64,000 bases of DNA, from the sequence record OR493421.1; one strand, written 5' to 3'. A model generated the notes under the pieces. That model was not told the DNA's origin. It made no database searches and saw only the letters and a program-made list of their open reading frames with translations. Made by a program: the position numbers and the translations under genes. This document shows positions 10,058-62,569 of the stretch, piece after piece. How positions within the stretch are numbered: the stretch's first letter is position 1; every line of letters begins with the position of its first letter.

Positions 10058-10081
10058 AATCGTAGCCCTAAATTAGTGAGG

Positions 10082-17467: not shown

Positions 17468-18031
17468 TTAGCTAGGTTGATGGGGATGAGTAAAAACCGA
17501 CCTGGAATAATATTCGTTGCGAATTTCAGGGGAGGTAATAAGGAAAAGTTCTCTGAGGAGTCTCTCCCACAGTTCTTTTTGAACCTCGTCTCTCCCTTTT
17601 GTTTTTTCCTCCTCGGTAAGTTCGTAAACCCAGTTCATTTCGAATACCCAAACCGGATATGTTTCCCGCCCACCAAAGTTTTTCTTAAGCAGAGTGGTCT
17701 CTAGAGAAGGCCGGCAGAAAATAAACTCGTCCTCGTCTAAAGATTTAAAGAACTTATCAAATACTGAAAAAATGGCTGGGTGTGCTACCTCAACAACAAA
17801 AATGAAATTCCTTTTCTGTACCCGAGAATAAACTTTGGTCGGGTGAGATTTTAATTTTTCGGCAAAGGTGTGCCCGGAGCAACAAAAACGAGTAGTGACC
17901 CCGGGTATTGAGTTCAAAATCATCATCGGACCCTTCATTCTTTCATCAAGTCCTGGAAGCCCTTCCTCGACGTATTCGTTCCATTGCTTTTTAAATAATT
18001 CTGACTCATTAGCACTCAAGCAATTGATCAT
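17468..18031 (-). CDS. hypothetical protein with Tyw3-like N-terminal motif
   Basis: LNSIPGVTTRFCCSGH. Confidence 0.6.
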   Translation of the reverse strand: MINCLSANESELFKKQWNEYVEEGLPGLDERMKGPMMILNSIPGVTTRFCCSGHTFAEKLKSHPTKVYSRVQKRNFIFVVEVAHPAIFSVFDKFFKSLDEDEFIFCRPSLETTLLKKNFGGRETYPVWVFEMNWVYELTEEEKTKGRDEVQKELWERLLRELFLITSPEIRNEYYSRSVFTHPHQPS

Positions 18032-44088: not shown

Positions 44089-44415
44089 TTATTTTTTAGA
44101 TTGAGCGATGTTGTGAAGCAACGATCCTAACATGATACAACTGAGCAATCCCAAGATCGTCATCATCAACGCAACAAGAAAAGGTAACGGAGATGATAGA
44201 ATGACCAGCCACGCAATCCAAACTAAAACATAGCACGTCATCTTAAACTTAATCAGTTTAAGGCTAAGTTTGGATTTTCCTGGAATTACAGCGACGACCC
44301 AGAAAGGAACATAACTTTTAAGTCCAATCGCTCTTTTCGTGTAGTAATCGTCAAAGACACTAAAAACCATCAAACAAACCGTCAATCCTACGACGAAGAA
44401 GAGATGGTAGTTCAT
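44089..44415 (-). CDS. membrane protein (3 TM)
   Basis: hydrophobic segments. Confidence 0.7.
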   Translation of the reverse strand: MNYHLFFVVGLTVCLMVFSVFDDYYTKRAIGLKSYVPFWVVAVIPGKSKLSLKLIKFKMTCYVLVWIAWLVILSSPLPFLVALMMTILGLLSCIMLGSLLHNIAQSKK

Positions 44416-44687
44416 TTCGCCAACGCGTCTTTGATTTTGACAACGATCCAGTTCTCGTTGCGCAGATCACCCTGAGACGGTACCCAACCAGGTTGCAGCT
44501 CACCCTTGGCGTTATGCAACACGTAAACCGGTTTTAGTTTAACCGGGCCGGGAAAGCCCTGCTTGCGTGCTTCAACGAGAGACATGGTCAAAGAGGCATC
44601 AAAAACAAATTGATTAGCGCCATTCCAATCGGTGCACTGAATCCCGTAACCGGGTTTGAGTTTTGCAACAGCAGAAGTAAATTTCAT
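44412..44687 (-). CDS. tad2: DUF2829 / Tad2-like anti-defence sponge protein
   Basis: MKF..A...LK.G.....WNG...F and WVPSQGDL..ENW motifs. Confidence 0.75.
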   Translation of the reverse strand: MKFTSAVAKLKPGYGIQCTDWNGANQFVFDASLTMSLVEARKQGFPGPVKLKPVYVLHNAKGELQPGWVPSQGDLRNENWIVVKIKDALAK

Positions 44688-44722: not shown

Positions 44723-44732
44723 GAATTTTATG
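44723..44732 (+). promoter_or_regulatory. putative late promoter (TATG type)
   Basis: GAATTTTATG on plus strand about 70 nt before the plus-strand tailspike; same 10-mer at 62499-62508 on minus strand. Confidence 0.5.
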
Positions 44733-44800: not shown

Positions 44801-46810
44801 ATGACGACTCCAACACAAAATGGTATACCCAGTAGCACCGCTATAGATGCTAGGTTTAACGCCGAGAAGTTAGATGAGATCGTTAATTCTGATAATGAAA
44901 CCTATAGTGACCGATTTGGAAATAGTAGGTTTACATTAAAGGGGTTAGCAACCCAGGTACAAGGATTTTTTGATAAAGTGCTTGGATCTGACGGAGCCGA
45001 CTATATCCCGTTAAAACAGGGAGGGAAAGTTGGCGACGCGATTGTTTCGGTTCACGTCGATTCATTTGGGGCGGATCCGTCAGGGCTAACTGACTCCACC
45101 CAAGCGGTAAAGTCCGCCCTGGCTGCAATTTCTACCGTCACCGGTAGCCCGATGAATGGTTCGGTTGATACTACTTACGCCTCTCTAGTTTTCGGAAACG
45201 GGAAATATGTAGTTGGCGATATCCCGCTATATTCCGGAATTTGGTATAAGGGGCAGGGCGCGTTTGAGACAATACTCATACCTAAAGCTGGATCAGAATT
45301 TGTCTTCACAACCGTGGGTACCAAGCCTTATGAAACCTACAGTATTTCATACAGGTTGTTCAGAACTATTATATCGGATCTTCATATAGGCTGCGGTTAT
45401 CAGAATGTGCTAAGTGGCGTCACTATCCCTACCGGTGTAGGAGGGATAAGGATTTATCATGCGTCTTACGTCACCATTGAAAACGTATATCTGCGTCATT
45501 TAGACGGGATGGGTTTTGATTTTGGATCTCTGTGGGACTCCGAAACATTTGGGTTAAGGGCGATGTACGTGGGGAACTGCCGTGATTCGTCTAACCCGGC
45601 CTGGGCTTTCAGACTGTGGGCGGCTGACGCGGCAACGGACGGTTCTAACGCGAATAGATTTTGGTCAACTCACATTGAGGGATGTCCCGCGGACATATGC
45701 GTCGACTTAAGATCCAGACACAATTTCTTTTTCGGCGGGAAAATAGAAAAAATCCGTTACAACGATGCAAATGCTTTCTGTTCTAGTGTTATAAGGGGTG
45801 CCGACAGCCTTGTTTTTTGCGATTTTGAACTTACTTCAGTAAACGTCATTCACTTTATGTTTGAAATTGTGGGTACGACAACGGTAATCGATACGAGCGC
45901 GGACGATGTTTCTGATCCAAACTGCGATCATTCTAGAGGCGTCGTGTTCATGAACCCACACATAATAGACAGTAATGCGTTGTCGGGGGACTATTTTAAA
46001 ACCAAATCTGATAGAGGTAGGATTAAGATTATCGGGGGGTACGCCAGGCACGCCAGGTATTTAATAAGTGGATCTGACGTAAAAATTTCTGATATGGATT
46101 TGACCCAATGCGGACCCACCATTGGCCTATTACAGGGGAATACGGTGTTGCAGGGCGTCACCATAGGTAGAAGCCGTGTCCCTACATCCGGGAGCTTCTC
46201 GGTATTTACAGTTACTGGTAACTCCAACAAAATACGTTTTTGTGAGTTCGGAACCGTTTACGGATCAGCCACTAATAATGGGTCGTGGATAACTGTGAAC
46301 TCTTCAACCGAATTGCAAATAAACGATCTTGAGTTTAGCGGTAGTATGCAAAACGGAATCAGCGGTTCTAACGCAACTCAGCAAAGAAAATTCAGAAATG
46401 TGAGACTTGCTTCCGGCGCTACGTACGGTTCGCTTATTAATGGCGGTTACCCTTACGACGGACTTCCAACCAAAATCATTACTGATACAGGATACGCCGT
46501 TTCTAACAGAATAACTGTTCCTGTTGACGGGACTGTTGCATCGCCAGCAACAGTCGGAGGAGCTTCGTCTATTCTGGTTAGAGTGGAAAATGCGTCATCT
46601 GTGGCGATCGCCTCAGGTAGAATATTTGGTGATGCGTCATTCGCGACCTTGAAAATAGAATCCGACATCCAGGGTAATTTATCTGTTACTGGAGTGGGGG
46701 TTAGTGGAGATGGTAAAATTTATTTGTCTCAATCCAATGGCGCGCTTTCCATAACTAATAGGACATCCGGTACCATTACAGTGTACATCCTCACCATAAA
46801 CGCAAAATAA
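44801..46810 (+). CDS. tailspike / capsule depolymerase TSP1 (pectate-lyase-3-like beta-helix)
   Basis: shared N-anchor (MTTPTQNGIPS...FNAEKLDEIVNSD..YSDRFG..RFTL.G); VDSFGADPSG.TDST.A...A and FGNGKY beta-helix entry motifs. Confidence 0.9.
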   Translation: MTTPTQNGIPSSTAIDARFNAEKLDEIVNSDNETYSDRFGNSRFTLKGLATQVQGFFDKVLGSDGADYIPLKQGGKVGDAIVSVHVDSFGADPSGLTDSTQAVKSALAAISTVTGSPMNGSVDTTYASLVFGNGKYVVGDIPLYSGIWYKGQGAFETILIPKAGSEFVFTTVGTKPYETYSISYRLFRTIISDLHIGCGYQNVLSGVTIPTGVGGIRIYHASYVTIENVYLRHLDGMGFDFGSLWDSETFGLRAMYVGNCRDSSNPAWAFRLWAADAATDGSNANRFWSTHIEGCPADICVDLRSRHNFFFGGKIEKIRYNDANAFCSSVIRGADSLVFCDFELTSVNVIHFMFEIVGTTTVIDTSADDVSDPNCDHSRGVVFMNPHIIDSNALSGDYFKTKSDRGRIKIIGGYARHARYLISGSDVKISDMDLTQCGPTIGLLQGNTVLQGVTIGRSRVPTSGSFSVFTVTGNSNKIRFCEFGTVYGSATNNGSWITVNSSTELQINDLEFSGSMQNGISGSNATQQRKFRNVRLASGATYGSLINGGYPYDGLPTKIITDTGYAVSNRITVPVDGTVASPATVGGASSILVRVENASSVAIASGRIFGDASFATLKIESDIQGNLSVTGVGVSGDGKIYLSQSNGALSITNRTSGTITVYILTINAK

Positions 46811-46868
46811 TAAACGACGCCTTATCAGTAGGGAAATAGTGGGAGGTGTGTATTTTTAACTACTCCCG

Positions 46869-46920
46869 CCCCACCCCAATTTTAACCTGAAGTGAGGAAA
46901 GGCAGATGACATCTTTTTAA
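46869..46920 (+). pseudogene. relic tailspike leader plus decapitated start (ATG ACA TCT TTT TAA)
   Basis: CCCCACCCCAATTTTAACCTGA is 22/23 identical to the reverse complement of 55819-55841; GAGGAA RBS and ATGACATC as in the TSP4/TSP6 starts. Confidence 0.6.
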
Positions 46921-46951
46921 AATTATCGGGATGTTTTTGAGATAGCGTGAT

Positions 46952-46987
46952 TATACTCTCCCTGACTATATAGTCAGGGAGAGTATA
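46952..46987. terminator. 36-bp perfect palindrome between convergent genes
   Basis: TATACTCTCCCTGACTATATAGTCAGGGAGAGTATA. Confidence 0.75.
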
Positions 46988-46997
46988 GCGGCAGCTT

Positions 46998-47795
46998 CTA
47001 TTTAAATGCCAAACTATCGAAGAACATATTCATCATTTCTAATTTCTTTTGATTCATCATTTTAATGAATAAATTTTGTTCTTTCTTAACGAATTGCTCT
47101 TCCCAACTCCCCAGATTATATTTCTTCTCACCCACTACAATGACTTTTTCGGTTCCATTGATATAACCTACTGCACTTTCTCCATTTAATCCGATAGAGA
47201 AATAATCGCCGCTAAATTGAGGGGCGTCGATAATAACGGACGAGAATCTTTTATTCGTTATAGTTTGCACCCCGAAGAAAAGTCTGGAGTGTACAACTCG
47301 GCAATCCCTCAAAGTCGTTCTTCCGGTCAAATCTCTGTTGACGATATAACTGTGATCAATAAAGTTATTGGCCAAATTACAGCCAATAAGATCACTGCAC
47401 TTAATAGCGATACCTTCCCCAATTTCCCCGTTCGACGTAATCGAAACATCCTGGAGTTTCGAGTCAACAATGGTGCACTGAGCTAAATTTGAAATATTGG
47501 TGCGATGAACCCGGGAGTTATTTAAATGAAGTTTTTTGGAGTAGCTTGTTAAACCGTTTAAGAAGATTACGCCAGTTAATGATGTTTCGTCACTAATATG
47601 TATCAGGTTGGGTCCAGTGAATAGGATCTCAGTTAACCACCCCACTACATTCTCGAATCTCTGAGAAGTCATCTTAGGGTTGTCTAAGACCAGTTTAAGT
47701 GAATCATCGCCATCAGTGAAATTAATATCCTCTTTTTTTATTACCAGATTAAAGTGTTCAATCAATTCTTCTTTAGTCACTTTCATTTTATTCAC
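46998..47795 (-). CDS. hypothetical protein with pentapeptide/beta-helix-like repeats
   Basis: NSRVHRTNISN...DSKLQDVSI...CSDLIGC periodic pattern. Confidence 0.7.
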   Translation of the reverse strand: MNKMKVTKEELIEHFNLVIKKEDINFTDGDDSLKLVLDNPKMTSQRFENVVGWLTEILFTGPNLIHISDETSLTGVIFLNGLTSYSKKLHLNNSRVHRTNISNLAQCTIVDSKLQDVSITSNGEIGEGIAIKCSDLIGCNLANNFIDHSYIVNRDLTGRTTLRDCRVVHSRLFFGVQTITNKRFSSVIIDAPQFSGDYFSIGLNGESAVGYINGTEKVIVVGEKKYNLGSWEEQFVKKEQNLFIKMMNQKKLEMMNMFFDSLAFK

Positions 47796-47894
47796 CTTTA
47801 TTTTACAGTTTAAAATGAGAACGTGTTATTTCAAACCGGTGTTTAAAACAACGTATTCTCGTTTATTACCAATAAAACATTACGGTCGTTAAAA

Positions 47895-48362
47895 TTAACC
47901 GAGCTGCATGGTGTATTCGACGGGTTTAAATTTAAGACTCTTGTAAAGCTTCTGAGCGGCTTTATTAGACCTGTAAACGTTTAACTGTACGATGTATCCA
48001 TTTGATCTTGCCGACACGATAGCAGCGATTAGGTTGCGTTTAGCAAGCCCTTTATGGCGATACTCAGGTAACGTATAAACGTTAAAGATTTTCGCTATTT
48101 TGAGATGATGTTCTAAAGCGTAAACAACGGATAGAATCGACACTATTTTCTTCCCATCAAAAACGAGGAAGTAGTGTTCGTTTAAACGGTTGTGTTTAAA
48201 ATCTTCCAGATTGAACGAATAGGGGTTGATGTCTTTAGCGATACTTTTCTTAGCGAAGTGATTAATGTCAGTCATCGCCAAATTTAACATTGTGATGACT
48301 TCTCCCTCTAAACCCAATCCAATTATTTCTTTTCCGTAGTAATTATCGTACATGAGGTTCAT
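47895..48362 (-). CDS. GNAT acetyltransferase
   Basis: IFNVYTLPEYRHKGLAK and N.AAQKLYKSL.F motifs. Confidence 0.9.
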   Translation of the reverse strand: MNLMYDNYYGKEIIGLGLEGEVITMLNLAMTDINHFAKKSIAKDINPYSFNLEDFKHNRLNEHYFLVFDGKKIVSILSVVYALEHHLKIAKIFNVYTLPEYRHKGLAKRNLIAAIVSARSNGYIVQLNVYRSNKAAQKLYKSLKFKPVEYTMQLG

Positions 48363-48410
48363 GATTACAGTCTCTTATGAAAAGTTCATAAATGGCCGTG
48401 GCGCGTTTAA

Positions 48411-48447
48411 AATAACTCCTATTCCCGATAAGGGAATAGGAGTTATT
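48411..48447 (-). terminator. repeated long-stem hairpin (TACTCC family), copy 3, inverted loop
   Basis: AATAACTCCTATTCCC-GATAA-GGGAATAGGAGTTATT; compensatory C-G to T-A change. Confidence 0.8.
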
Positions 48448-48452
48448 AGAAC

Positions 48453-49226
48453 TTACTTATAAAGTTTCAGGGCTTTGGAGCAAATGTCTGACCGCACACT
48501 ATCAGCCGCATTGAAACGATAAACCGGGAATCCATTTTCAGGATCTCGTTCGATACGCTCCAGCAGATCTTCCAGACCGGATTTAACTCCTTTAGGAAGA
48601 TCGCACTGGGTAAGGTCGCCGTTGATGATTACCGTAGTGTTCTCACCCATACGAGTGATGAACATTTTCATCTGCATAACTGTAACGTTTTGCGCTTCGT
48701 CAAGAATCACTACTGAGTCAGAAAAAGTACGACCCCTCATAAAAGCAAAAGGAGCGACTTCGACTTTCTCCACGCCAGGCTTCATGCAATAGTTAAGCAT
48801 TCCACCGCCCAGGCGTTTCAGTAAGATGTCGTAGACCGGCCGGAAGTAAGGCGCGAATTTTTCATTAACATCTCCGGGGAGAAAACCCAGATCTTCATCG
48901 GCCTGTAAGACCGGCCGTGTAACGATGATCTTTTCCACGTCTTTAGCCAGCAGACGTTCTGCGGCGTAACAAGTCGGGAGGAACGTTTTACCGCTACCCG
49001 CTTCACCAATACCGATGACGACATCGTGGGCGTGTAACCCATCCCAATATTTTTGCTGCATTGGGGTTTTCGGCTCAATCTTACTCCGATCAGCTTTTGC
49101 AAGAGGTAGATTTACTTCACTGAAATTGTTGTCCACCAGTTTCAGTTGGCTACTTTGGGACTTATCTTGACGTCTTGCTTCGCGACGAGCGTCGCGGTTA
49201 GCACGCTTAACACTACGATTATGCAT
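48453..49226 (-). CDS. phoH: PhoH-family ATPase
   Basis: GEAGSGKT, RPV, LGFLPG, FMRGRTF, ILDEAQN and GDLTQCD motifs. Confidence 0.95.
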   Translation of the reverse strand: MHNRSVKRANRDARREARRQDKSQSSQLKLVDNNFSEVNLPLAKADRSKIEPKTPMQQKYWDGLHAHDVVIGIGEAGSGKTFLPTCYAAERLLAKDVEKIIVTRPVLQADEDLGFLPGDVNEKFAPYFRPVYDILLKRLGGGMLNYCMKPGVEKVEVAPFAFMRGRTFSDSVVILDEAQNVTVMQMKMFITRMGENTTVIINGDLTQCDLPKGVKSGLEDLLERIERDPENGFPVYRFNAADSVRSDICSKALKLYK

Positions 49227-49297
49227 ATAAGTACCTGCTGTGTGTGGGTTAACTCCTTACCTTCATAGCATTAGGGCTGGGTAGAAAATAACTAGAA

Positions 49298-49531
49298 TTA
49301 TGTCCCGGAGTAAGTTGTTAAAGCTTTGAACGACACACCCTGATTAACTGTGTTGATGTATTCCGCTACCGCGCCGGCGCCCATCGCATCCATTCGCTGA
49401 GTCCTCTCACCCAAACCAAATGACCCGAATTGAGGGAAACCCCACTTAGTAACGGTTGTAAAATTACAGCCTTGAGTAATGAACCCCATATCGGCAGTGT
49501 AATCAAAAGATCGGACCTTCACATTAACCAA
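49298..49531 (-). CDS. possible small protein or gene fragment (no ATG or good RBS)
   Basis: protein-like 77-aa frame with TTG start only. Confidence 0.3.
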   Translation of the reverse strand: MVNVKVRSFDYTADMGFITQGCNFTTVTKWGFPQFGSFGLGERTQRMDAMGAGAVAEYINTVNQGVSFKALTTYSGT

Positions 49532-49608
49532 TTTAGCGTACGCTCTGGAGGCAAACTCTACGGTACGTTAGTTAAAAAAATACCCCCAATTCTACTGACT
49601 ATAAGGAT

Positions 49609-49890
49609 TTACTGCTGTTCTTCTTCTGCCTGAGTTTCTTCTGAAGCCCGTTCTGCGCGTTTGATATCTTCGATGTCTTTGTTCACCGCCTCGTCTTCTT
49701 CTTGCCGAGCGGTATCTTTCTCCATACCTTCGGCTTTCTCGATACGACCCAACTCGATAGATACACGCTGCAATTCGTTATTAGCGATAATCGATTCGAG
49801 CTCGGCGATGTATCGTTTGGCTTCGGCGCCTTCTAAACGCAGGTGGCAAATTTGAGCTTGAAGTTGAAGAATTTGTTTTTCGGCTGACAT
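49609..49890 (-). CDS. coiled-coil protein, possible tail-fibre chaperone
   Basis: heptad repeats, acidic tail, directly downstream of TSP2. Confidence 0.65.
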   Translation of the reverse strand: MSAEKQILQLQAQICHLRLEGAEAKRYIAELESIIANNELQRVSIELGRIEKAEGMEKDTARQEEDEAVNKDIEDIKRAERASEETQAEEEQQ

Positions 49891-49935
49891 GATATTTCCT
49901 TAGATGGGTTTATGGTCCATATATTGGTTAAATCG

Positions 49936-51453
49936 TTAAGGAACAATTATCCAGGTCGATCCATCGTACCAAACCTCTACTTTAGTTGGGGTGGTGACAG
50001 TTAAAGGGTACGTAGCGTAACCACTTACGTTGACTTCCTGGGCGTTGGCGGTGATATAGTATGTTCCAGCCCTAAGTATCTTCAATTCGTAAAAATGACC
50101 TGAAGACATATTACTTATAGCCGGCATTGTCAGAGTTATCCCGGCTGCATTTATCAGATAACAAGGAATGAGCGCATTCAGCGTTGTATTCGTCGTAAGC
50201 ACACTGTACTTAGTCATATTGCGCAGACGTCTACCGTATCCATCGTAAATCATCGTCGAGTTAACATACGACATATCTGTCATATCGGAAGATTTGCTGA
50301 ACACCATCGAATAAGTGGGCATTCCAGAAAATCTTATTCCGACTGGCGCAGACCCGGTCGATACGTAGTTATTATACGTGGCGCCGGACGCATAGAAGTT
50401 CATTCTGTTATTAGTTGAACGGACACCGTACAACCATGTTTTAGCTGAAGTGCTCGCAGGGCGAACCAGTACGCCAGCCACACCATCATAGAGGCTTTGT
50501 TGGAGCAGCGGAATATCGATACCGTTTAGCGAAGCTCCAGACTTATTGATCACCGCCCCAAATTCGCATATTACGGCATTATCGGCGGCAGAGTTGCTGT
50601 TAATGATAGTGTTGGCGTTGATAGCCCAAACTTTATTAATCAGGTTGACGTTGAACCCCACGCCCGAAGTCGGTGTTAGAGTGGCCCCATCAGCTGTCGC
50701 CCATTCATCAACTGTCACCACACCAGTGGTTTTGTTTATACTGGTAATCAACCCCCAACATTTAGTGGGGTGGAGTGTCTGAATGACGTCACCAACTAGG
50801 GCGTTGGTCAGGAAAGAAGAATACACCGATGGGCTGACCGTAACAGTCGTGGCGGTATATGACGCAGTATCAACTGTTTCCCAGTCTTCCAGTGCTGGAG
50901 CTAAGGCGTCGGCAAATAATGTTACGCCATCATTCAACCCATATGCAGCTACGCCCCTGGCGTTCTGCGCACCCGTAACCTGAGCATTGAAGACTCCAGT
51001 ATCTCCTGATGAAGCTCGGCCACCTCGTAAACTCAATGCGGTCGCGTGCCTGCGAATACTACGGAATTTCCTACCTATGGTGATCGAACCATTCAAAAGA
51101 AGATCGGTATCGCGAAGAGCGCCCTGCTCTGTAAAAATAGCAAGGTCGTTAGTCGAAGAATACCCCAGATAAGGACGCGGAAGACCCGAGTCACTCATTG
51201 TCCTCATACGGGAAAGAACATCTCCCACATTAGAGGTTCTATATCCGACATTCTCCGCCCCGTTTTCAGTGGAAAACGACGTCATCCAATTAGAAACGTT
51301 TTGTCTAATCCCGTTTAACGTCGTTCTGCTGATCCCAAGACGGTCTGTAAAAGACGTGTTGTTAGAGTTGATAAACTCGTCAAATTTTTCTGCGTTGAAT
51401 AATCGGTCTTGAACCGAGTTACTCGGTATATTGTTATTAGTTGGGGTAGTCAT
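49936..51453 (-). CDS. tailspike / tail fibre TSP2
   Basis: shared N-anchor MTTPTNNNIPS...FNAEKFDEFINS...TDRLG; beta-rich body; C-terminal WYDGSTW. Confidence 0.85.
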   Translation of the reverse strand: MTTPTNNNIPSNSVQDRLFNAEKFDEFINSNNTSFTDRLGISRTTLNGIRQNVSNWMTSFSTENGAENVGYRTSNVGDVLSRMRTMSDSGLPRPYLGYSSTNDLAIFTEQGALRDTDLLLNGSITIGRKFRSIRRHATALSLRGGRASSGDTGVFNAQVTGAQNARGVAAYGLNDGVTLFADALAPALEDWETVDTASYTATTVTVSPSVYSSFLTNALVGDVIQTLHPTKCWGLITSINKTTGVVTVDEWATADGATLTPTSGVGFNVNLINKVWAINANTIINSNSAADNAVICEFGAVINKSGASLNGIDIPLLQQSLYDGVAGVLVRPASTSAKTWLYGVRSTNNRMNFYASGATYNNYVSTGSAPVGIRFSGMPTYSMVFSKSSDMTDMSYVNSTMIYDGYGRRLRNMTKYSVLTTNTTLNALIPCYLINAAGITLTMPAISNMSSGHFYELKILRAGTYYITANAQEVNVSGYATYPLTVTTPTKVEVWYDGSTWIIVP

Positions 51454-51471
51454 AATTCACCTTGAATGAAC

Positions 51472-51493
51472 GAGAGGGAGTTAACCCCCTCTC
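51472..51493 (-). terminator. hairpin between TSP3 and TSP2
   Basis: GAGAGGG...TTAA...CCCTCTC. Confidence 0.55.
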
Positions 51494-51506
51494 TTAAGCT
51501 GATAGG

Positions 51507-53900
51507 TTAGCTAAATGTTGTTTTAACCCAGGCGTTCCAGGCACCGGTATTTGTGTTCCAGGTTCTCCTGTAAACATTATTCCCTACCCCGTTAAAGGTC
51601 TGGAAGGCCGTTGCTCTTGAATTAGGGTGCCCGGTATAAAAGTCGACAGCACCGTACGACTCCGGCCATGTCGAGTCGTTATAAATCGACGACCTCACAG
51701 TGCAATAAGGAGTAAACGACGTTGGGACGGATGAGGACGAGATAATGGAAACCATATTGTTAACGACAGTCCCTCCGACCATCTGCCAGTTACCATCCTT
51801 ATTATACCGCCATCCTTGCACCTCACCATAAGGAGAACCCTTCGTCCCAACAAACATTCCGTCGGCCCAGGCTATGTTACTGTATCCCGTCATAGTTGAT
51901 GCCGATGGTTTACCGTAAGTGGTTGAATCCCAAACCGTGGAGAATTCGTCAAACCTCCAATTCCCACTTAAATCAACGGAGACTAATCCTAAGTACCTGT
52001 CTCTAAAACGAACACCCTTTACTTTGGGGAATAGCGCGAAGTTAGTAGCGGATCTGACAACTAATTCTTCAGAATAAAGTTCTGGTGCCGTAGATCCGGT
52101 AACCAAGAAGAAGTTAGATACGTATGCTGTATCCGCCCCGTTTCTTTTAAAGGAAACATTCTTAGCGTAAACTTTGGAAGGTGTTGGGTGTGTCACCCCC
52201 CAGTTTATTAATAACTGAGCCTGCGCGATGGTATCGGTGGATGCGCTTGGGGGATTCTGTATGGCCCCATTGATCGAAACGACCGGGATTTGACGGTCAC
52301 CTACAATCGAAATAGAGTTGTAAACGTCGTCTGGGACAGAACCATTCACAGTCACCCCGTTGATATTAAGAGTGGATATTTCAGTATATCCTATTGCTAT
52401 TAAGGTTCGGGCGTTTCCGGACGGCCAACATTTGATATTCGAAAGAGTCAGTGACTTTATTGTACTTGGGTAAGTATTGGTGTAAGAAGATGGCTGGATG
52501 ACGTTACCAACCCTAATCGTGTTATAAAGATGTTGATTTCCGGTACTCCCATTTACCCTGACATCAATGTCGGATATGTTAATGCTACCCATTTCGGAAT
52601 AGTAATCGGTTAAAGGGGAGTTGCCGAAAGAAACTTCGCTACCCACCCTAACTGCTGAGTATTGGGTGAATCCTTTCACGCCAGATATTGATACTTTCTC
52701 GACCCCATACCCGCCTTGAGAGTTAACCACCACCCCGTTCCAAGTGTAGACTTTGGTAACACCATCCAAATCACTTATCTTATACCACGGATTGATGTTT
52801 TTTATGGTGACGTTTTTAATCATGAGGTAATCGAGATTGGTGATCGCGTCGCTATCGGCTTCAGTCCCCCCTTCTATCCACAGGCAGCCGGCTACGACGG
52901 CGACCATGTCGTCGGTGGTGAACCCATAAATATCTTCAATAAGGATATTTTCAGAACAGCCGGTCACACCGTCGCCTCTAGATCCACCTTGGGGAAAAGC
53001 GTTGGCGATGTGTGAGTTAAATCTCAGATTTTTAGCGTGAAAGTTAATGTTCCCGCCATGATTTACGCTATGTCCTCTAAAATCATGCACGTACATATCT
53101 TCTATCTTGGCGTTCTTGAACAGCGAAACGATAAATCCGTGCGAGAGGTCCTTAAATGTCCCGGTTGCGTTTAATGTCTCTTCCCCCTGCCCGCTCCAAT
53201 TTCCATCAAATTCACCGCCACGCCAAGAAAAGCTGTTCTCCCTATTACCTACAAACACGAACATGTTATTACGAACGAGATTATCTAATTTAAAAACTAC
53301 CCCCGGATCGCAATAAACGATAACGTTTTTAGTTAAAAGGATTTTCACTTTTTTGTTTATCAGGTACGTTCCTTTGGAAAACTTAATATGTTCAAAGGAA
53401 CTCTTGAACATATTAATGATTGCTCCTGAATCTTGTGTCACGCCGTCACCTACAGCACCGAACATCTGTGGGGTGACGAAGTTATCATTTCCAATCCTTT
53501 CCCAGTAATAGTTGATCCCTTGAGCTACTGTACCGCCATCATCTAACTTAGTGCCGATGTGACCAACGAAGATACCTCCACCCGTAGTTCCATTTTCATA
53601 ATAGGACTTGAGGAAAATACGCTGACCTTCGGTTCTCACTGGGGTCGATCTCAGCGTATCAAAAGATTTGACTCCGCCAATTAATTTGAACCCGTCGGGA
53701 GAGCCCAACAGATTCGTGAAAGTATCCTGGAAGCCATTAGCGAGTTCCTGAACCCCTTTCATTGTAATACGTTTTTTACCAAAACGATCCGTATAAGTCA
53801 GATCGTCGGAATTCATCACTCGGTCGAATTGTTCCGAGTTAAACTTGAGGTCCACCGCAGCATTGCTGGGGATGTCACCCGTAGTTGGAGTTGTAGCCAC
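51507..53900 (-). CDS. tailspike / capsule depolymerase TSP3
   Basis: N-anchor, LR...GQRIFLKSY..GGG.F..DDGG..WER domain, PQMFGAVGDGVT.D beta-helix, knob-like C-terminus. Confidence 0.92.
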   Translation of the reverse strand: MATTPTTGDIPSNAAVDLKFNSEQFDRVMNSDDLTYTDRFGKKRITMKGVQELANGFQDTFTNLLGSPDGFKLIGGVKSFDTLRSTPVRTEGQRIFLKSYYENGTTGGGIFVGHIGTKLDDGGTVAQGINYYWERIGNDNFVTPQMFGAVGDGVTQDSGAIINMFKSSFEHIKFSKGTYLINKKVKILLTKNVIVYCDPGVVFKLDNLVRNNMFVFVGNRENSFSWRGGEFDGNWSGQGEETLNATGTFKDLSHGFIVSLFKNAKIEDMYVHDFRGHSVNHGGNINFHAKNLRFNSHIANAFPQGGSRGDGVTGCSENILIEDIYGFTTDDMVAVVAGCLWIEGGTEADSDAITNLDYLMIKNVTIKNINPWYKISDLDGVTKVYTWNGVVVNSQGGYGVEKVSISGVKGFTQYSAVRVGSEVSFGNSPLTDYYSEMGSINISDIDVRVNGSTGNQHLYNTIRVGNVIQPSSYTNTYPSTIKSLTLSNIKCWPSGNARTLIAIGYTEISTLNINGVTVNGSVPDDVYNSISIVGDRQIPVVSINGAIQNPPSASTDTIAQAQLLINWGVTHPTPSKVYAKNVSFKRNGADTAYVSNFFLVTGSTAPELYSEELVVRSATNFALFPKVKGVRFRDRYLGLVSVDLSGNWRFDEFSTVWDSTTYGKPSASTMTGYSNIAWADGMFVGTKGSPYGEVQGWRYNKDGNWQMVGGTVVNNMVSIISSSSVPTSFTPYCTVRSSIYNDSTWPESYGAVDFYTGHPNSRATAFQTFNGVGNNVYRRTWNTNTGAWNAWVKTTFS

Positions 53901-53964
53901 GAGGTTACTCCTTTAAAAGAATGTAGTATAAAAGACTTGCGCAAGTCTACTGAATTTGGTTCAG

Positions 53965-53973
53965 CATAAAATC
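53965..53973 (-). promoter_or_regulatory. putative late promoter (TATG type)
   Basis: GATTTTATG on minus strand 65 nt before TSP3. Confidence 0.45.
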
Positions 53974-53982
53974 GAAGAAGAG

Positions 53983-54020
53983 TAATAGCTGCTGTTCCCC
54001 GGTGGGAACAGCAGCTATTA
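53983..54020 (-). terminator. hairpin, 17-bp stem
   Basis: TAATAGCTGCTGTTCCC-CGGT-GGGAACAGCAGCTATTA. Confidence 0.8.
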
Positions 54021-54026
54021 GTTAAC

Positions 54027-55805
54027 TCATTCCTGGGTCCAAGCGCCCCACGACCCGCCATTCAGCCATCTAAAGTAGCGAACATTGGTAGTCATATTGA
54101 ACAATCGCAGAACCGCAAAATTATTTGTTCCGTCAGATACAAGACGGGCACTCAATATTCCAGTCCCAGTCATCCCAGTAGGAATACCGGTATGAAGCGC
54201 TATATTGGAAATGTAATAATCCTGAGATGAAGTCGCTAGACTAGTAAGATCGGTCGCTGTTGTTAATGGAACAAGATCCCTGGACATGTTAATCCATCTT
54301 GTCCCGGTAGAGAAGTTAGGAGTCCCGTTAAGATTAATAAAGCTCCCTTCAAATACACCGGCTCCAGGGGCGGTAAGGTACTTCAGTCTTGTTTGATTAG
54401 ACCCACCTAATTGCTCGAAACACTCCCTGTTGTTAACCAACCCATTATTATAAGACGCACTATAACCCACCTGGCCTCCCACTGAGGATATTGGGAAGCC
54501 CTGATGCCCGGTAAGAGTATAAGGTCGGCCTAAATTAACCCTTGCAAGGCTGGTTTTGGGAGCAACGGTTCTAAAATGACGATTATAAATATAACACCCG
54601 GTAACGTCAGTTATAACAATATCGTCTTCACCTGTATCGTCGGCATCACAATCTCTGAAATTGGATTGAATGGTGCTGTTCCAGGCTCTAACAATGTTGA
54701 TCCCGCCTTTATTAATATGCCAGAAGTTACACCCTATAATCTCCGAACCAACTATACCTATGTTGGTGTCAGAGAGAATACCCCATCCGGTGTTCACGTT
54801 AACATAAGACCCGTCGAAATAGACCCCGATAATTTTTAAAGTGTCTAAGTCGTACCCGGCTTCATTAAAAAGGAATACTCCAGATGTTTCCCCAGGGACT
54901 ATTTGGTTTCCCGGGGAAATGGTTCCACCACCGCCGATCATTAGAGCGTGATCACGATTGTTGCCCCAAAGTTCGCAGTCGGTAACGTACCAGTCGGTTG
55001 TGTTAATGCAAGCTTTCGCAGCGGCTAATCTTGTTTTCCTTAAATGCACTACAAATGAAGAATTTGTATTCCCGGATCCTTTCTTTGTCCCTAAAGCCAC
55101 GCCATAGAGATCGGATTTCACTCCCCCAGACGAAACCCCATCCAACTGACATTCATCCAATCCGCAGGAATTGCCGTTGGTGAGGTCGATGGACCAATTG
55201 TTGGTTCTGGAGGTAGCTAGGTCAGTTATCCTTAAATTGGACAGTCTTATATTACTTATCCCATTAGCCGCGGGCGTTGCGTAATTAGATTGCGCTATAA
55301 TGGGGAAGTCTCCTCCTGACCACACCAAGCATAATTTAGACCTTCCTGGACCTATGAGGTCGGTCGGCTTGCTGATCATCAATGTGGAATTGATGTATCT
55401 CGTCATGTCGTCAAGTTCGAACGTGGAGGAGCTAGACGCCAACATTCTATTTATAGCTGCTGCATTAGCGGTAGCCGCATCGAGGTCGGCCCCATAAATC
55501 TTAGGAGCGCCCCACGCTGGATTTCTTATATTAGCTCTCCCGGTTATGACGTAGGGGGCGTCAAGAAATGTCTGAACGGTATCTCCAGAACTTGTCCCTA
55601 CGTTACTTGCGCCGGCAGTCCCGGTCAGCCCTGACAGGAAATTTTTTACGTAATTATAAATTCCCGTAAGTGTAAAGCGTTTTATACCCAATCTGTCGGT
55701 ATACTGATCAAGATCGGAATTAACCGCTTCGTCTATTTTTTCTGCATTAAATATCTGATCCAAAATGTTACCCGAAGGAACGGGATTTTTGGTAGGTGAT
55801 GTCAT
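54027..55805 (-). CDS. tailspike / depolymerase TSP4
   Basis: N-anchor MTSPTKNPVPSG..DQIFNAEKIDE; GASNVGTSSG linker; beta-helix; C-terminal RWLNGGSWGAW. Confidence 0.9.
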   Translation of the reverse strand: MTSPTKNPVPSGNILDQIFNAEKIDEAVNSDLDQYTDRLGIKRFTLTGIYNYVKNFLSGLTGTAGASNVGTSSGDTVQTFLDAPYVITGRANIRNPAWGAPKIYGADLDAATANAAAINRMLASSSSTFELDDMTRYINSTLMISKPTDLIGPGRSKLCLVWSGGDFPIIAQSNYATPAANGISNIRLSNLRITDLATSRTNNWSIDLTNGNSCGLDECQLDGVSSGGVKSDLYGVALGTKKGSGNTNSSFVVHLRKTRLAAAKACINTTDWYVTDCELWGNNRDHALMIGGGGTISPGNQIVPGETSGVFLFNEAGYDLDTLKIIGVYFDGSYVNVNTGWGILSDTNIGIVGSEIIGCNFWHINKGGINIVRAWNSTIQSNFRDCDADDTGEDDIVITDVTGCYIYNRHFRTVAPKTSLARVNLGRPYTLTGHQGFPISSVGGQVGYSASYNNGLVNNRECFEQLGGSNQTRLKYLTAPGAGVFEGSFINLNGTPNFSTGTRWINMSRDLVPLTTATDLTSLATSSQDYYISNIALHTGIPTGMTGTGILSARLVSDGTNNFAVLRLFNMTTNVRYFRWLNGGSWGAWTQE

Positions 55806-55826
55806 TATCTAATTCCCATCAGGTTA

Positions 55827-55870
55827 AAATTGGCGGTGGGGATGTTATCCCCATTGTCCACCGCCAATTT
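55827..55870 (-). terminator. hairpin between TSP5 and TSP4
   Basis: AAATTGGCGGTGG...CCACCGCCAATTT with inner GGAT/ATCC stem. Confidence 0.65.
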
Positions 55871-55887
55871 GACTATTTATGAGGTTT

Positions 55888-58047
55888 TTAGCTCACTACG
55901 GCAGCGCTAATTATTACACCGTCAGTATCGGATGTGGGTGTTCCGACTTTAGCGCGTTTATTCCCTGTCGAGTCATACCACTCATGAACATCGCCATTAA
56001 CGATATGTTGTCGTGAATATGATTTACTCAGCCCACTATTATGTCCGGTTGACAACGGCATGTCGTTGTTATAAATATTCAGGTTGCCTATTATAAATTT
56101 AGTTTGAGACCCGGCAATAAATGTACCCGGCCTAAATCTAACAATAAGCTGTCCCGTATCATTAGGTATAAAGGGCAATACGCATTTTTGCCATCTGGGG
56201 TTAGTGTCAAGCAGAATATTTCTCCGGTATAGTAAAACGGAACCGTCGGAGTTAAATATTTCAGCTAACACACTTTTGGTTGGCGTGGAAGACGACATCT
56301 TAACTTCAAAGTCGATCCAGGTCTTTTTACCCGCGATTGGATTTATCAGGGCGTATACCCTAGCAGTGGCGTCGGCTGCCGTTACTTCCATTGCTTCATT
56401 TAAACCCCCATATGAGTTATTCATGGGGGTTTTAGTTGCAGACACTGCAGTGAGGTCGGCTGTTATACCAGAGTAAAGGTTATTATAATCTACCTTCTGG
56501 ATCCCTATGTTTAGGGACGAGGCCTGAGGGTGTCCTGATAAATAAGACAGCGGATCGATCGTTTTAAAGACGTCGTTTAAATTGGACAGCGGGTTGATAT
56601 CACTACCTTCCTGTAAAGCCAAGCAATGAGATGCGTCAAACACGTTCGTTCTGCTAAGATTACCTATCGCCGTCTGACCTATACTCGAAGCGAACTCTAT
56701 AATGTATTTAGGCATTCCGCTATCGTACAAATCAGAAAAATACAGATTCCCCACATTAGGCGTGTATGACTTGATCATCGGAGCTACAACAGAACCGTTA
56801 GTGTTGATGACATTATTGGCCAGGAATCTCACCCCAGACAGGTATCCGATGGAAGTTGTTTCCACGTGGTGTCTGTCATTATTAAGGTTATCAGTTAAAC
56901 CTACGCCCGAATTAGCTAAAAGAATATGCGTGTCGCCTTCAACAAGGAACTCCTGTCCGAACTTGTTCGCCAAGAACACCAAACCGCGTCCTGCGTTGTT
57001 GGTCGTTATGCCCGGTTCAATCCAAACATCGTGAGAGTTCCCGGTTCTATTGCCTGTTCTATACCAATCGTTTCTTGAGATATTGAAAGGGGTCGCCGGA
57101 CCATTTGTCGTAGTCCCATTTGTACCCAAAGCCAATTTAATCCCATAAAGGTTGTCGGCAAAAGTACAGTTGTCGATCACCCCGCCGGCGCTATAACCAG
57201 AGATACAAACACCTATCGTATCCTTAGTGACATCACCGTAAAAGAATGAATCCCTGACCCTAACGTACGGCATGTCGATGGAATTATTGCCGATCGCACA
57301 CTCGGTGTATCTCGACATAACTAACCTTTCAAAAAGATGCATGCCGGAAGCATTTCGAGAAGTCGACTTATATCTTACTGCCCCCTTACCACCAGAAATA
57401 GTCATATCACTCAGACCACTTCTCACCGGATTATTTGTAAAGTCAAATAAATATCCTGATGACAGAATGATCTTAGTCGATAACATGCTTTCACCCCTAA
57501 CGTTAAACACGAAAGAGTTAGAGGAAGTTATGTCCAGCCCAGGACCGGTGTAAATAAAACAACCGTTCTCTATAGTCAGCAGCGGTCCTTTCTGCAACAT
57601 AAAGGGTAGTTCGTTAGCACCTGCAGCAGCTCGTTTATACGTGACATCCATTAAACACGCCCACCAATCGTTGAAAGCCTCGGTGTCGTCGGCGCTACCG
57701 TCACCTTTAGCCCCGAAGTTCTTTCTCAGCCCAGCGGTGCCGTCTAAAAGGAGATCGCCTACTTTCCTCGTCATTACCGCCGGGGCCCTGGTAGAAGGAA
57801 CTGAGAGACGATCTTCGACATTACTGCCGTCAGCAGTACCTATCTTGCTCGCCCCGGTGACGCCCGATAACCCACTTAACCACGTTTGGATGAAATTATA
57901 AATCCCACTTAGTGTAAATCTCTTTTTACCGAATCTATCAGTGTATTCAAGATCATCGCTATTAACGACTTCGTCGAGTTTTTCCCCGTTAAAAATCTGA
58001 TCTAAAATATTCCCGCTAGGAATAGGATTCTTAGTTGGCTGTGTCAT
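55888..58047 (-). CDS. tailspike / depolymerase TSP5 with C-terminal CBM-like domain
   Basis: N-anchor; FGAKGDGSADDTEAF; ends WYDSTGNKRAKVGTPTSDTDG. Confidence 0.9.
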   Translation of the reverse strand: MTQPTKNPIPSGNILDQIFNGEKLDEVVNSDDLEYTDRFGKKRFTLSGIYNFIQTWLSGLSGVTGASKIGTADGSNVEDRLSVPSTRAPAVMTRKVGDLLLDGTAGLRKNFGAKGDGSADDTEAFNDWWACLMDVTYKRAAAGANELPFMLQKGPLLTIENGCFIYTGPGLDITSSNSFVFNVRGESMLSTKIILSSGYLFDFTNNPVRSGLSDMTISGGKGAVRYKSTSRNASGMHLFERLVMSRYTECAIGNNSIDMPYVRVRDSFFYGDVTKDTIGVCISGYSAGGVIDNCTFADNLYGIKLALGTNGTTTNGPATPFNISRNDWYRTGNRTGNSHDVWIEPGITTNNAGRGLVFLANKFGQEFLVEGDTHILLANSGVGLTDNLNNDRHHVETTSIGYLSGVRFLANNVINTNGSVVAPMIKSYTPNVGNLYFSDLYDSGMPKYIIEFASSIGQTAIGNLSRTNVFDASHCLALQEGSDINPLSNLNDVFKTIDPLSYLSGHPQASSLNIGIQKVDYNNLYSGITADLTAVSATKTPMNNSYGGLNEAMEVTAADATARVYALINPIAGKKTWIDFEVKMSSSTPTKSVLAEIFNSDGSVLLYRRNILLDTNPRWQKCVLPFIPNDTGQLIVRFRPGTFIAGSQTKFIIGNLNIYNNDMPLSTGHNSGLSKSYSRQHIVNGDVHEWYDSTGNKRAKVGTPTSDTDGVIISAAVVS

Positions 58048-58358: not shown

Positions 58359-60230
58359 CTAACCAGTAATCAATTCAGCATAAGTATCCTGCAATGTAGC
58401 TAAATTCATTGAATACCTAACCGTCTGTCCTTTACTGACAGTAAAGTTTCCTGAAACTTGCCCTGTCATTTTCGCAAAATACGCGGCGGAATGCCCGTCC
58501 ACTGTAACAATGAACGAACTGTTCGTTGCATCATTGAGTTGCGCTACAAAGTACACTTGTTTTTGACATCTTGTGGTCCACACGGTATCTGTGGTCGATA
58601 CACCCCAACCAATGCGCAGTCGTCTACCGTTGCCTGTTGTCAACGTACCAGCAACATTGACCTCAGATCCTGGCGTGTACAATTTTCCAATGGCGTCCTG
58701 GTGTGGTATGTAAACAGGCGCTCCACTATAAGTCCCCCCAAAATTAATATTTTCGACCGTGATTCTGGAAGAACTATTGTTACCGCCGTACACGGCATAT
58801 GTTGGGCTGGTCTGATTATCTGTGTTCCAGATTATCTGACCATCTTTTATGGTTAGCGTCGCGGGTATGCCATCGTCAATCGCAAAACATGCTTTCGAAC
58901 TAAACCCAAGCGATGTATTACCTTTTGTCACAGCCACATTATGCGCAATCAACCGCACCGATACAGTAGAGACACCATTAAGGCCAGTATACGAACCAAC
59001 TTCAGAGCACAGTCTCGCAAATTGGTTTACTGAAACCCCCTCTGCGTTTTCAATCGTCACATCAGCATAATTTCCGAGTTTAAACACGCAGTTGGGTCCG
59101 TATCCCCTGGCTCTTGAGTAGTGGACTATCGAGTCCACAATTTCTACAGAGTACGCATCTTTCGTTTGCTGAGATGCCGCCGGGTCAGTCTGAGATGCTA
59201 TAAACAGAGCAGAAATAGTGTGGAATCCAGTACAGCCATAGATATAGCTTTCACTAGGCCCCATCAGTTTTTTCGTAATAGCTACTGAGGTGCATTTCTG
59301 GAATTTAAACTTAGCGGGCTGGAAGTTCTCAATATTAATATCATGAGAATCAAGGAAAAAGGCACCTGCCGTGCAGTTACCCTCTAGGATTGAATTAATG
59401 AAACCAAAGCCGTTTGTTCCTGCAAAACAAACCGAACCGCCACAGTTATATGCAACTACTTGGGAGGCTGCGTTTATACTTTGAACGCCAACTTTCTGAG
59501 TCACGCCATCAACAACTACGGTACGACCAAGAGACCCAACAAGCCACCCATTGTAATTCCGACCATTAACAATGAAGGTAGGACCGATAACGTCCTCTTC
59601 GAACCTTACAGCAAAGGATGATGCCTCTCGGTTGTCTGGGAACGCACCTGCGTCTGTTTTATCACCCAAAATATGGATAGATATGAAGGGGTCATAGCAC
59701 CTGATGAACTTAAACTGAGCTTCACCTTTCATTTGATAGTGACCAACAACGCCGGCAATGTTACCACCATAGTTCCAGTAGTGATACGCGGACTCAACCG
59801 TTGACTGAAATACATATTGGCGAGTTATCGGAACCCAATCCTTGGTGTCATTTACAATAATCTTTGAGTTATACCCACTGGCGTCAAACGAATCATTGTA
59901 TGCTGCTAAAAATGCGTTCTCACCACGCAATCCCCTTGCGTAGTAGTTTGATAGCATAATGCATTTATCTTTATTTATAAGCGCGCCTAATGCCGCTTCC
60001 ACTGTAATACCACTGGACGTCCCTACGTTAGACGCCCCGGAACTTGATCCTAGGCTGCTCATCCAATTCTGGATGACGTTATAAAGTCCTGAAAAAGTAA
60101 ATCGCTTCTTACCGAAGCGGTCAGTATATTGGAGGTCGTCGCTATTAACGACCTGGTCTATTTTTTCAGCATTAAAGAGCTGGTCGTTCTTAGCTGAACT
60201 AGGAACGGCGTTTTGTGTTGGGAGTGTCAT
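58359..60230 (-). CDS. tailspike / depolymerase TSP6
   Basis: start moved to ATG 60230 (MTLPTQNAVPSS..., GAGGAA RBS); N-anchor; beta-helix body. Confidence 0.9.
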   Translation of the reverse strand: MTLPTQNAVPSSAKNDQLFNAEKIDQVVNSDDLQYTDRFGKKRFTFSGLYNVIQNWMSSLGSSSGASNVGTSSGITVEAALGALINKDKCIMLSNYYARGLRGENAFLAAYNDSFDASGYNSKIIVNDTKDWVPITRQYVFQSTVESAYHYWNYGGNIAGVVGHYQMKGEAQFKFIRCYDPFISIHILGDKTDAGAFPDNREASSFAVRFEEDVIGPTFIVNGRNYNGWLVGSLGRTVVVDGVTQKVGVQSINAASQVVAYNCGGSVCFAGTNGFGFINSILEGNCTAGAFFLDSHDINIENFQPAKFKFQKCTSVAITKKLMGPSESYIYGCTGFHTISALFIASQTDPAASQQTKDAYSVEIVDSIVHYSRARGYGPNCVFKLGNYADVTIENAEGVSVNQFARLCSEVGSYTGLNGVSTVSVRLIAHNVAVTKGNTSLGFSSKACFAIDDGIPATLTIKDGQIIWNTDNQTSPTYAVYGGNNSSSRITVENINFGGTYSGAPVYIPHQDAIGKLYTPGSEVNVAGTLTTGNGRRLRIGWGVSTTDTVWTTRCQKQVYFVAQLNDATNSSFIVTVDGHSAAYFAKMTGQVSGNFTVSKGQTVRYSMNLATLQDTYAELITG

Positions 60231-60269: not shown

Positions 60270-60278
60270 CATAAAATC
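60270..60278 (-). promoter_or_regulatory. putative late promoter (TATG type)
   Basis: GATTTTATG on minus strand 40 nt before TSP6. Confidence 0.4.
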
Positions 60279-60307
60279 CAACCGCCTATAAGGGCGGTTG
60301 GATTTTA
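60272..60307 (-). terminator. hairpin, 15-bp stem
   Basis: TAAAATCCAACCGCC-TATAAG-GGCGGTTGGATTTTA. Confidence 0.8.
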
Positions 60308-62498: not shown

Positions 62499-62508
62499 CA
62501 TAAAATTC
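62499..62508 (-). promoter_or_regulatory. putative late promoter (TATG type)
   Basis: GAATTTTATG on minus strand 76 nt before TSP7. Confidence 0.5.
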
Positions 62509-62535: not shown

Positions 62536-62569
62536 AGTATAGTCCATCCCCTAGGGGATGGACTATACT
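62536..62569 (-). terminator. 34-bp perfect palindrome, terminator-like
   Basis: AGTATAGTCCATCCCCTAGGGGATGGACTATACT followed by T-rich tract on minus strand. Confidence 0.8.

Follow-up and report, generated by a model that had tools for sequence, protein, structure and literature searches.

Rho-independent terminators occur between the late genes of phages, and tandem arrays of several tailspike genes are known from the Ackermannviridae and from the jumbo Klebsiella phages PhiK64-1 and RaK2. The Cin/C-segment of phage P1 is a serine-invertase host-range switch related to the Gin/G-segment of phage Mu. For the latter, the switching of host range by DNA inversion is known (PMC3575834); FBKp24 is a multi-tailspike jumbo Klebsiella phage (PMC13385381), Miami, a jumbo myophage, is a distant relative of the Erwinia phages RisingSun and Joad (PMC7844079), and Klebsiella podophages in which a second receptor-binding protein (RBP) is lost or truncated have already been described (PMC6872550). 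The locus considered here lies in a stretch of 64,000 nucleotides (nt), hereafter the window, which corresponds with 100% identity to positions 186001-250000 of the 252,505-bp record of Klebsiella phage YC1 (OR493421.1). It carries genes for tailspike proteins (TSPs), numbered TSP1 to TSP7, and the element in question is the short stretch of DNA that follows the stop codon of TSP1. We conclude that this stretch is probably the non-functional fossil of a tandem tailspike-spacer-tailspike junction.

YC1 is a Miami-like jumbo phage of the ~250-kb genome class, and its closest complete relatives are phiKp_32, KPN8, Miami (genus Miamivirus), Raoultella phage VB_ZK_P1 and BUCTxx100. Seven TSP genes are counted in YC1, instead of the six implied by a preliminary description of the window, and the annotation agrees with that description in making TSP1 the sole plus-strand gene across the 64 kb.

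The stretch downstream of TSP1 and its origin

In the post-TSP1 stretch, which we call the orphan spacer and stub, a degraded terminator hairpin and a U-tract are followed by a ribosome-binding site and the region of a start codon. It harbours one arm (A) of an inverted repeat whose other arm (B) lies for the most part in the TSP5-to-TSP4 spacer and reaches into the beginning of TSP4. The strings quoted in the preliminary description are present after TSP1, in the minus-strand TSP5-to-TSP4 spacer and upstream of TSP6, and the resemblance extends beyond the 22 + 8 nt flagged there. About 100 nt, from the stop codon of TSP1 to the start codon, align with intact inter-TSP spacers, namely the TSP5-to-TSP4 spacer of YC1, two spacers of KPN8 and that of a JGI metagenomic contig (Ga0490018_000333, hereafter L012). 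When positions 46850-46912 are compared with the whole window on both strands, the best local score is 20, in register upstream of a TSP start, and is reached by none of 100 dinucleotide shuffles (mean 14.1, standard deviation 1.2, maximum 18). The orphan spacer is 66% identical to the TSP5-to-TSP4 spacer of the same genome and 67% identical to the gp72-to-gp73 spacer of KPN8, the latter alignment scoring 24.8 against 16.5 +/- 1.5 for the shuffles, 0/100 of which attain the observed value. With the TSP1a-to-TSP1b spacer of L012, the identity rises to 80% over 85 nt and includes a perfect run of 31 nt spanning the U-tract and the ribosome-binding-site region; the closest relative of the orphan spacer is this spacer of the same locus, and not the TSP4 leader.

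The proposal that TSP1 came out of a tandem array is upheld inasmuch as a true inter-TSP spacer and gene start are found from which the gene is missing. Their nearest intact counterpart, on the other hand, is not the TSP5-to-TSP4 spacer; it is the same-locus, same-strand TSP-spacer-TSP junction of relatives with two TSPs (L012, and also the two-TSP slot of L018 described below). The more general suggestion of tailspike shuffling, here taken to include the gain and loss of tailspikes, is borne out by spacer alignments that exceed those of the shuffles. The identity of the gene start with that of TSP4, which had also been pointed out, does exist, but most of the bases concerned are common to nearly all TSP starts of the phage group; beyond this universal start the match amounts to three bases, at one of which the relative found in Logan sample SRR31188207 differs.

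A predicted intrinsic-terminator hairpin followed by a U-tract is present in the TSP5-to-TSP4 spacer (z -3.3) and in the L012 spacer, which folds as a strong predicted terminator (-43.4 kcal/mol, z -3.1). In the orphan copy a short hairpin followed by the U-tract is still predicted, part of the hairpin stem is gone, and the fold equals that of shuffled sequences (z -1.05).

The slot occupied by TSP1 has the same layout in 5/5 complete relatives: a gene of 91 amino acids (aa) on the minus strand, a single TSP on the plus strand, a convergent gene for a protein of ~262-265 aa (265 aa in YC1), a GNAT acetyltransferase gene, a PhoH gene and the minus-strand TSP array. The single inverted tailspike is an old and conserved layout of the whole phage group and no event peculiar to YC1. 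The metagenomic relatives were located by a protein search with the 265-aa product; back-translated patterns of the same protein, run against IMG/VR and JGI, recovered no relatives. Among them, the slot of L015 contains a single TSP and that of L016 and L017 a TSP plus a 151-aa DUF4376 gene. In L012, whose 262-aa protein is 93% identical to the YC1 265-aa product, it contains two tandem TSPs on the strand corresponding to the plus strand of the window, with a spacer of 107 nt between them. The upstream TSP, of at least 612 aa, is interrupted by the end of the contig; the distal one is intact (672 aa), bears a TSP1-type anchor (residues 1-84 are 69% identical to YC1 TSP1) and is followed by a hairpin and then by the 262-aa gene. 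The Logan contig L018 (SRR7532985) covers the whole slot, with tandem TSPs of 828 and 602 aa, both provided with a TSP1-type anchor, between the 91-aa and the 262-aa genes, and L019, from a second sample, displays the same two-TSP arrangement as far as the contig reaches. Since the distal TSP of L018 is 91% identical, 3' flank included, to the single TSP1 of phiKp_32, the TSP1 slot is evidently a small array on the plus strand, able to grow and to shrink.

The limits of homology define what is exchanged in these phages. Inside TSP1, backbone DNA homology to all relatives breaks off after 122-153 nt (44922-44953); it returns precisely at the stop codon of the 265-aa gene, hence the variable unit comprises the TSP1 body and all the DNA on its 3' side. 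The phage of sample SRR31188207, ~97.5% identical to YC1, has a TSP1 protein that is 99% identical and the same orphan spacer; its TSP5, TSP4 and TSP3 are as in YC1 and in the same order, and its TSP2, TSP6 and TSP7 bodies differ. The common TSP5-TSP4-TSP3 block extends from a point 11 nt ahead of the TSP5 start codon to one 89 nt inside TSP2. In the other relatives each slot keeps its first ~90-410 nt only, together with the upstream leader in the case of the TSP3, TSP6 and TSP7 slots. It follows from these limits that the exchanged unit is a TSP body with its 3' spacer, the boundaries of which fall either at the ribosome-binding site or start of the next gene or in the anchor segment. A TSP body can thus be expected to bring a spacer and a gene start along with it.

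The same pair of phages provides an estimate of the constraint acting on the orphan region. Their TSP1 genes differ at 30 of 2010 nt, 23 of these differences being at third codon positions, and at 16 of 325 fourfold sites (4.9%); the orphan region, about 141 nt long, has undergone 7 substitutions and 2 indels. As its divergence is close to that of the fourfold sites of TSP1, the orphan spacer and stub drift at the neutral rate, without selection.

The scenario that we favour combines these observations. In the Miami-like jumbo phages, a TSP gene is made up of a conserved 5' anchor segment and a freely exchanged receptor-binding body, and this body travels with its 3' spacer, where a terminator hairpin and a U-tract are found together with the ribosome-binding site that serves the following gene. 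The TSP1 slot, which in every relative is on the other strand from the main array, accommodates one or two tailspikes, or a tailspike and a small gene, according to the phage. The YC1 lineage would once have possessed, or have recombined with, a two-gene TSP1 slot, from which one deletion would have taken the distal gene, leaving behind the spacer, the ribosome-binding site and the start. The inverted repeat would exist only because the two opposed arrays each contain a spacer of the same family. We infer a loss in place, rather than an import with an irregular right-hand junction, and the mosaic boundaries lead us to propose homologous recombination in the anchor segments as the driving force of the exchange, which fits the modular RBP model of Klebsiella phages (PMC6872550).

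Several observations weigh against this scenario. The search for a donor covered phage DNA, tblastn, IMG/VR by protein and by pattern, JGI metagenomes by pattern and 5.8 billion proteins, and found no genome in which a YC1-type TSP1 body is followed by an orphan-type spacer and then by an intact second gene. It yielded YC1 itself and one Logan contig, and this only close homologue (99%) has the same stub; the next best TSP1 bodies are 59-61% identical, and the one whose context was checked belongs to a podophage-like contig. The upstream TSP of L012 is only a distant relative of YC1 TSP1 (28% over ~137 aa), and the contig stops inside it. The ~40 nt that separate the stub from the palindromic hairpin between TSP1 and the convergent 265-aa gene have no match above chance in the window or in the loci compared (18/100 shuffles are equal), and provide no landmark for the right-hand end of the deletion. 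Finally, loss in place and import out of a two-gene donor would both fit the present data.

Other explanations of the orphan spacer and of the inverted repeat

According to an alternative that we consider unlikely, and which corresponds to the history proposed in the preliminary description, the TSP1 body and its 3' spacer would have been lifted from a main array of the minus-strand type, either that of the phage itself or that of a co-infecting relative, and pasted into the single-gene slot, with a left crossover in the anchor segment and an irregular right junction just inside the next gene. Members of the spacer family are indeed found in main arrays (TSP5-to-TSP4 of YC1, gp72-to-gp73 and gp78-to-gp79 of KPN8), the variable unit of all slots extends from the anchor end to the ribosome-binding site and start of the next gene, and a coincidence with TSP4 is seen in the few bases that come after the start codon. 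However, the main-array spacers attain 66-67% identity against 80% for the same-locus spacer of L012, and the ribosome-binding-site part of the orphan spacer matches L012 and not TSP4. The additional TSP4 match is reduced to the three bases mentioned above, with their difference in the Logan relative, and the existence of two-gene TSP1 slots makes a move from one array to the other unnecessary.

It seems quite improbable that the orphan spacer has been kept for a function, either as a weak first terminator or as a 3'-end stabiliser of the TSP1 mRNA, its start region being an incidental mini reading frame. The short hairpin and U-tract still predicted would agree with such a role, as would the persistence of the element since the split between YC1 and the Logan phage, but the fold is equal to that of shuffles and the element evolves at the rate of fourfold sites. 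Furthermore, a perfect 36-nt palindrome located 40 nt downstream is the obvious candidate for the terminator, and its position is conserved in all relatives. Miami, KPN8 and VB_ZK_P1 do without the orphan element, and in these three phages TSP1 is followed by the hairpin alone (46-51 nt). YC1, phiKp_32 and BUCTxx100 carry extra DNA after TSP1 which is recognisable as a spacer in YC1 only: the post-TSP1 regions of BUCTxx100 and phiKp_32 match no spacer, and that of phiKp_32 contains no start-like signal above chance.

The preliminary description had raised the possibility of an active switch, in which recombination between the two arms would flip the 46.9-55.8 kb block, pair TSP4 with TSP1 and phase-vary the receptor-binding genes. 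The inverted repeat itself is real and above chance: it was retrieved independently as the top pair (46869-46895 and 55814-55840, 27 nt, 81% ungapped; 25/28 with one indel) and is the longest of the region, and the inversion of the Mu G segment offers a precedent. What the two arms have in common, however, is the descending arm and U-tract of the inter-TSP terminator hairpin, followed by the ribosome-binding site and the start shared by TSP genes. Their longest perfect identity is 15 nt, unrelated sequence is intercalated between the matching parts, and in the Logan relative the arms have changed independently (arm A in the U-tract and the start region, arm B by one change in the U-tract and one in the ribosome-binding-site region), the common perfect run being shorter still; the TSP5-to-TSP4 spacer as a whole has 2 changes in that phage. 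Both arms are situated in front of the coding sequences or on their first few bases, and since a flip would keep every reading frame and alter no protein, there would be nothing to phase-vary. The supposed invertible block would also carry along the PhoH, acetyltransferase and 265-aa genes, and three relatives (Miami, KPN8 and VB_ZK_P1) have no arm A at all.

As the preliminary description had stated, no recombinase appears in the window: Pfam domains of resolvases, invertases and integrases are missing from the 36 open reading frames (ORFs) tested there, a set that comprises all seven TSPs, five short ORFs next to the TSP1 slot, the PhoH-like gene and 23 out of the 26 remaining minus-strand ORFs with a length of at least 170 aa, the rest of the 252-kb genome not having been scanned. 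The comparison of gene order and orientation among relatives points the same way, a single orientation being observed in 12/12 contexts (five complete genomes and seven metagenomic contexts), and the SRR31188207 contigs pass through both arms in the standard configuration. The inversion model is strongly disfavoured and, in our opinion, has scarcely any chance of being correct; the locus exhibits none of the testable features that define the Gin/G-segment. A break of the Logan contig after TSP1 was considered as a hint of rearrangement and rejected, the contig passing arm A and stopping in the palindrome. The short-read contigs L007, L013 and L014 all end in or just beside this palindrome, and because two other assemblies stop at it from the other side, the break is attributed to an effect of short-read assembly.

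A chance likeness between an AT-rich intergenic stretch and a leader can practically be dismissed: two similarities nearby are at chance level, that of ~24 nt after the stub to a minus-strand segment inside TSP4 (inverted pair I2, equalled by 18/100 shuffles) and that of a 10-nt start-like string after TSP1 of BUCTxx100 (equalled by 175/500), but 0/100 shuffles reach the scores of the orphan spacer in two independent comparisons, and the perfect 31-nt run with L012 occurs in the same positional context. In annotations, the stub does not deserve the name of a gene, nor the inverted repeat that of a switch.

Tailspike genes and neighbouring features of the window

Table 1. Position of the features discussed, in window coordinates.
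Feature	Position	Strand	Description
TSP1	44801-46810	+	669 aa; ORF and annotation; PF12708 at aa 84-230
TSP1 anchor-coding 5' segment	44801-44953	+	conserved; from block ends and aligned N-terminal peptides
Orphan inter-TSP spacer and putative stub of lost second tailspike gene	46811-46911	+	from alignment to intact spacers
Arm A of the inverted repeat	46869-46912	+	inside the orphan spacer
Segment between stub and terminator palindrome	46912-46951	.	~40 nt
Perfect 18+18 nt palindrome	46952-46987	.	inverted repeat I7, 100% complementary; -32.5 kcal/mol, z -7.9
265-aa gene	46998-47795	-	convergent with TSP1
GNAT acetyltransferase	47895-48362	-	inside the supposed invertible block
PhoH-like ATPase	48453-49226	-	inside the supposed invertible block
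TSP2	49936-51453	-	505 aa; common N-terminal anchor
TSP3	51507-53900	-	797 aa; tail fiber and EPS depolymerase PHROGs, PF27114
TSP4	54027-55805	-	592 aa
Arm B of the inverted repeat	55798-55841		mostly in the TSP5-to-TSP4 spacer; 8 nt into the TSP4 5' end
TSP5-to-TSP4 spacer	55806-55887	-	terminator hairpin, U-tract, ribosome-binding site; fold -27.1 kcal/mol, z -3.3
TSP5	55888-58047	-	719 aa
TSP6	58359-60230	-	623 aa
TSP7	60447-62423	-	658 aa; first gene of the minus-strand array
ATTTTATG-type motif	44723-44732, 53960-53975, 60270-60279, 62499-62508		also at orthologous sites in L002-L006

The coordinates of the features are given in Table 1. An N-terminal module of ~50 aa is common to 7/7 TSPs and matches residues 3-55 of PDB 9occ_G as well as phrog_3257/17635/13362; in TSP1, the N-terminal ~54 aa match this entry, described as 'putative tail protein gp13', and tail-fiber PHROGs. 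The TSP1 body is a pectate-lyase-like beta-helix (PF12708), homologues of which are present in Klebsiella podophages and prophages. TSP3 and TSP7 both match PF27114 and tail fiber/EPS depolymerase PHROGs, and no family match was obtained for the bodies of TSP2, TSP4, TSP5 and TSP6. With their common anchor, variable body and mosaic boundaries, the YC1 TSPs thus have, at the level of sequence, the attributes of modular cassettes that associate an anchor with a predicted depolymerase body. In phiKp_32 (L002, 21881-24153), one tailspike slot is annotated as two ORFs, an anchor-bearing piece and a body piece, separated by one break.

A ATTTTATG-type motif, which is conserved in the relatives, is found 60-75 nt upstream of TSP1, TSP3, TSP6 and TSP7, and could be a putative promoter element. 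The tested 10-mer of this motif is not enriched within the window, scans for sigma-70 promoters and for terminators gave background levels, and no promoter is claimed.

The perfect palindrome between the convergent TSP1 and 265-aa genes is likely a bidirectional terminator, and an equivalent hairpin exists at this convergence point in every relative. Other perfect or near-perfect palindromic hairpins are located at 48411-48447, 53983-54020 and 62536-62569 of the window and at 17620-17662 of BUCTxx100 (L006). The stem family that follows TSP1 in Miami, KPN8, phiKp_32, L016 and L018 recurs at another intergenic site in BUCTxx100, and the terminator hairpins too seem to shift between sites.

The 265-aa protein has no Pfam or PHROG match. 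Its gene is conserved in DNA at both ends and highly variable in the middle, and the identity of the protein among relatives varies between 34% and 93%; the gene may be one more that evolves rapidly beside the tailspikes, with a part in specificity or in counter-defence. On the other side of the slot, the 91-aa gene divergent from TSP1 (44412-44687, minus strand) encodes a Tad2-like (Thoeris anti-defence 2-like) protein (PF11195, E 6e-14), and its position is kept in all relatives examined. In L016, a 254.6-kb relative, the 151-aa DUF4376 protein (8843-9298, minus strand) stands after TSP1 in place of a second tailspike; DUF4376 is often associated with tail-fibre accessory proteins. The annotation of phiKp_32 also includes an IS200/IS605 TnpB (9878-11014) ~1.7 kb upstream of the TSP1 slot, with none at the matching place of YC1. 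Between PhoH and TSP2, the stretch 49227-49935 contains small ORFs of 93 and 38 aa and forms part of the variable TSP2 cassette; it is missing in the Logan relative, which has another TSP2, and the 93-aa ORF has no family match.

BUCTxx100 (OR529409.1) was deposited as a Stenotrophomonas maltophilia phage, and its backbone is 90-95% identical to those of the Klebsiella and Raoultella phages. This suggests that either its host label or a large host jump by way of the tailspike set deserves re-examination.

Comparison with known systems

The orphan spacer resembles the Rho-independent terminators of phage late genes in its motif, which in the intact spacers is the descending hairpin arm with its U-tract; it differs from them in that the stem of the orphan copy is partly gone and its predicted fold is no more stable than that of random sequence. 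With the Gin/G-segment of Mu (PMC3575834), the locus shares an inverted repeat flanking a block with tail-fibre or tailspike genes. Unlike it, YC1 has no invertase among the ORFs tested, its arms are not conserved crossover sites and exchange no coding sequence, the block contains unrelated genes, and no relative has the other orientation.

The arrays of the Ackermannviridae and of PhiK64-1, RaK2 and FBKp24 also consist of tandem TSPs, which target different glycans and whose cassettes are exchanged between relatives. YC1 belongs, however, to another lineage, akin to RisingSun and Joad (PMC7844079), in which one slot on the opposite strand expands and contracts alone. As an extension of our scenario, which we put forward as a rather far-fetched one, the two opposed arrays could infrequently exchange cassettes through their common anchor and spacer with no need for a dedicated recombinase, and the orphan spacer would be one product of this traffic. 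If so, the TSP1 slot would be an expandable entry port for receptor-binding modules in the Miami-like jumbo phages.

A close parallel is provided by the modular RBP systems of Klebsiella phages (Latka et al. 2019, PMC6872550), where an N-terminal attachment module is likewise combined with an exchanged depolymerase body (a predicted one in YC1), the number of RBPs per slot varies and remnants of a second RBP are left. The setting is different here, namely a jumbo phage of ~250 kb with seven TSPs in two opposed arrays and one module of ~50 aa, and the remnant is a spacer with a start instead of a truncated protein. Our observations provide a clean, dated example of a multi-tailspike jumbo phage altering its set of receptor-binding genes, useful for comparative studies of host specificity in Klebsiella phages. 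They call for no new mechanism and add to the known modular evolution of tailspikes a well-documented instance with an unusually legible scar.

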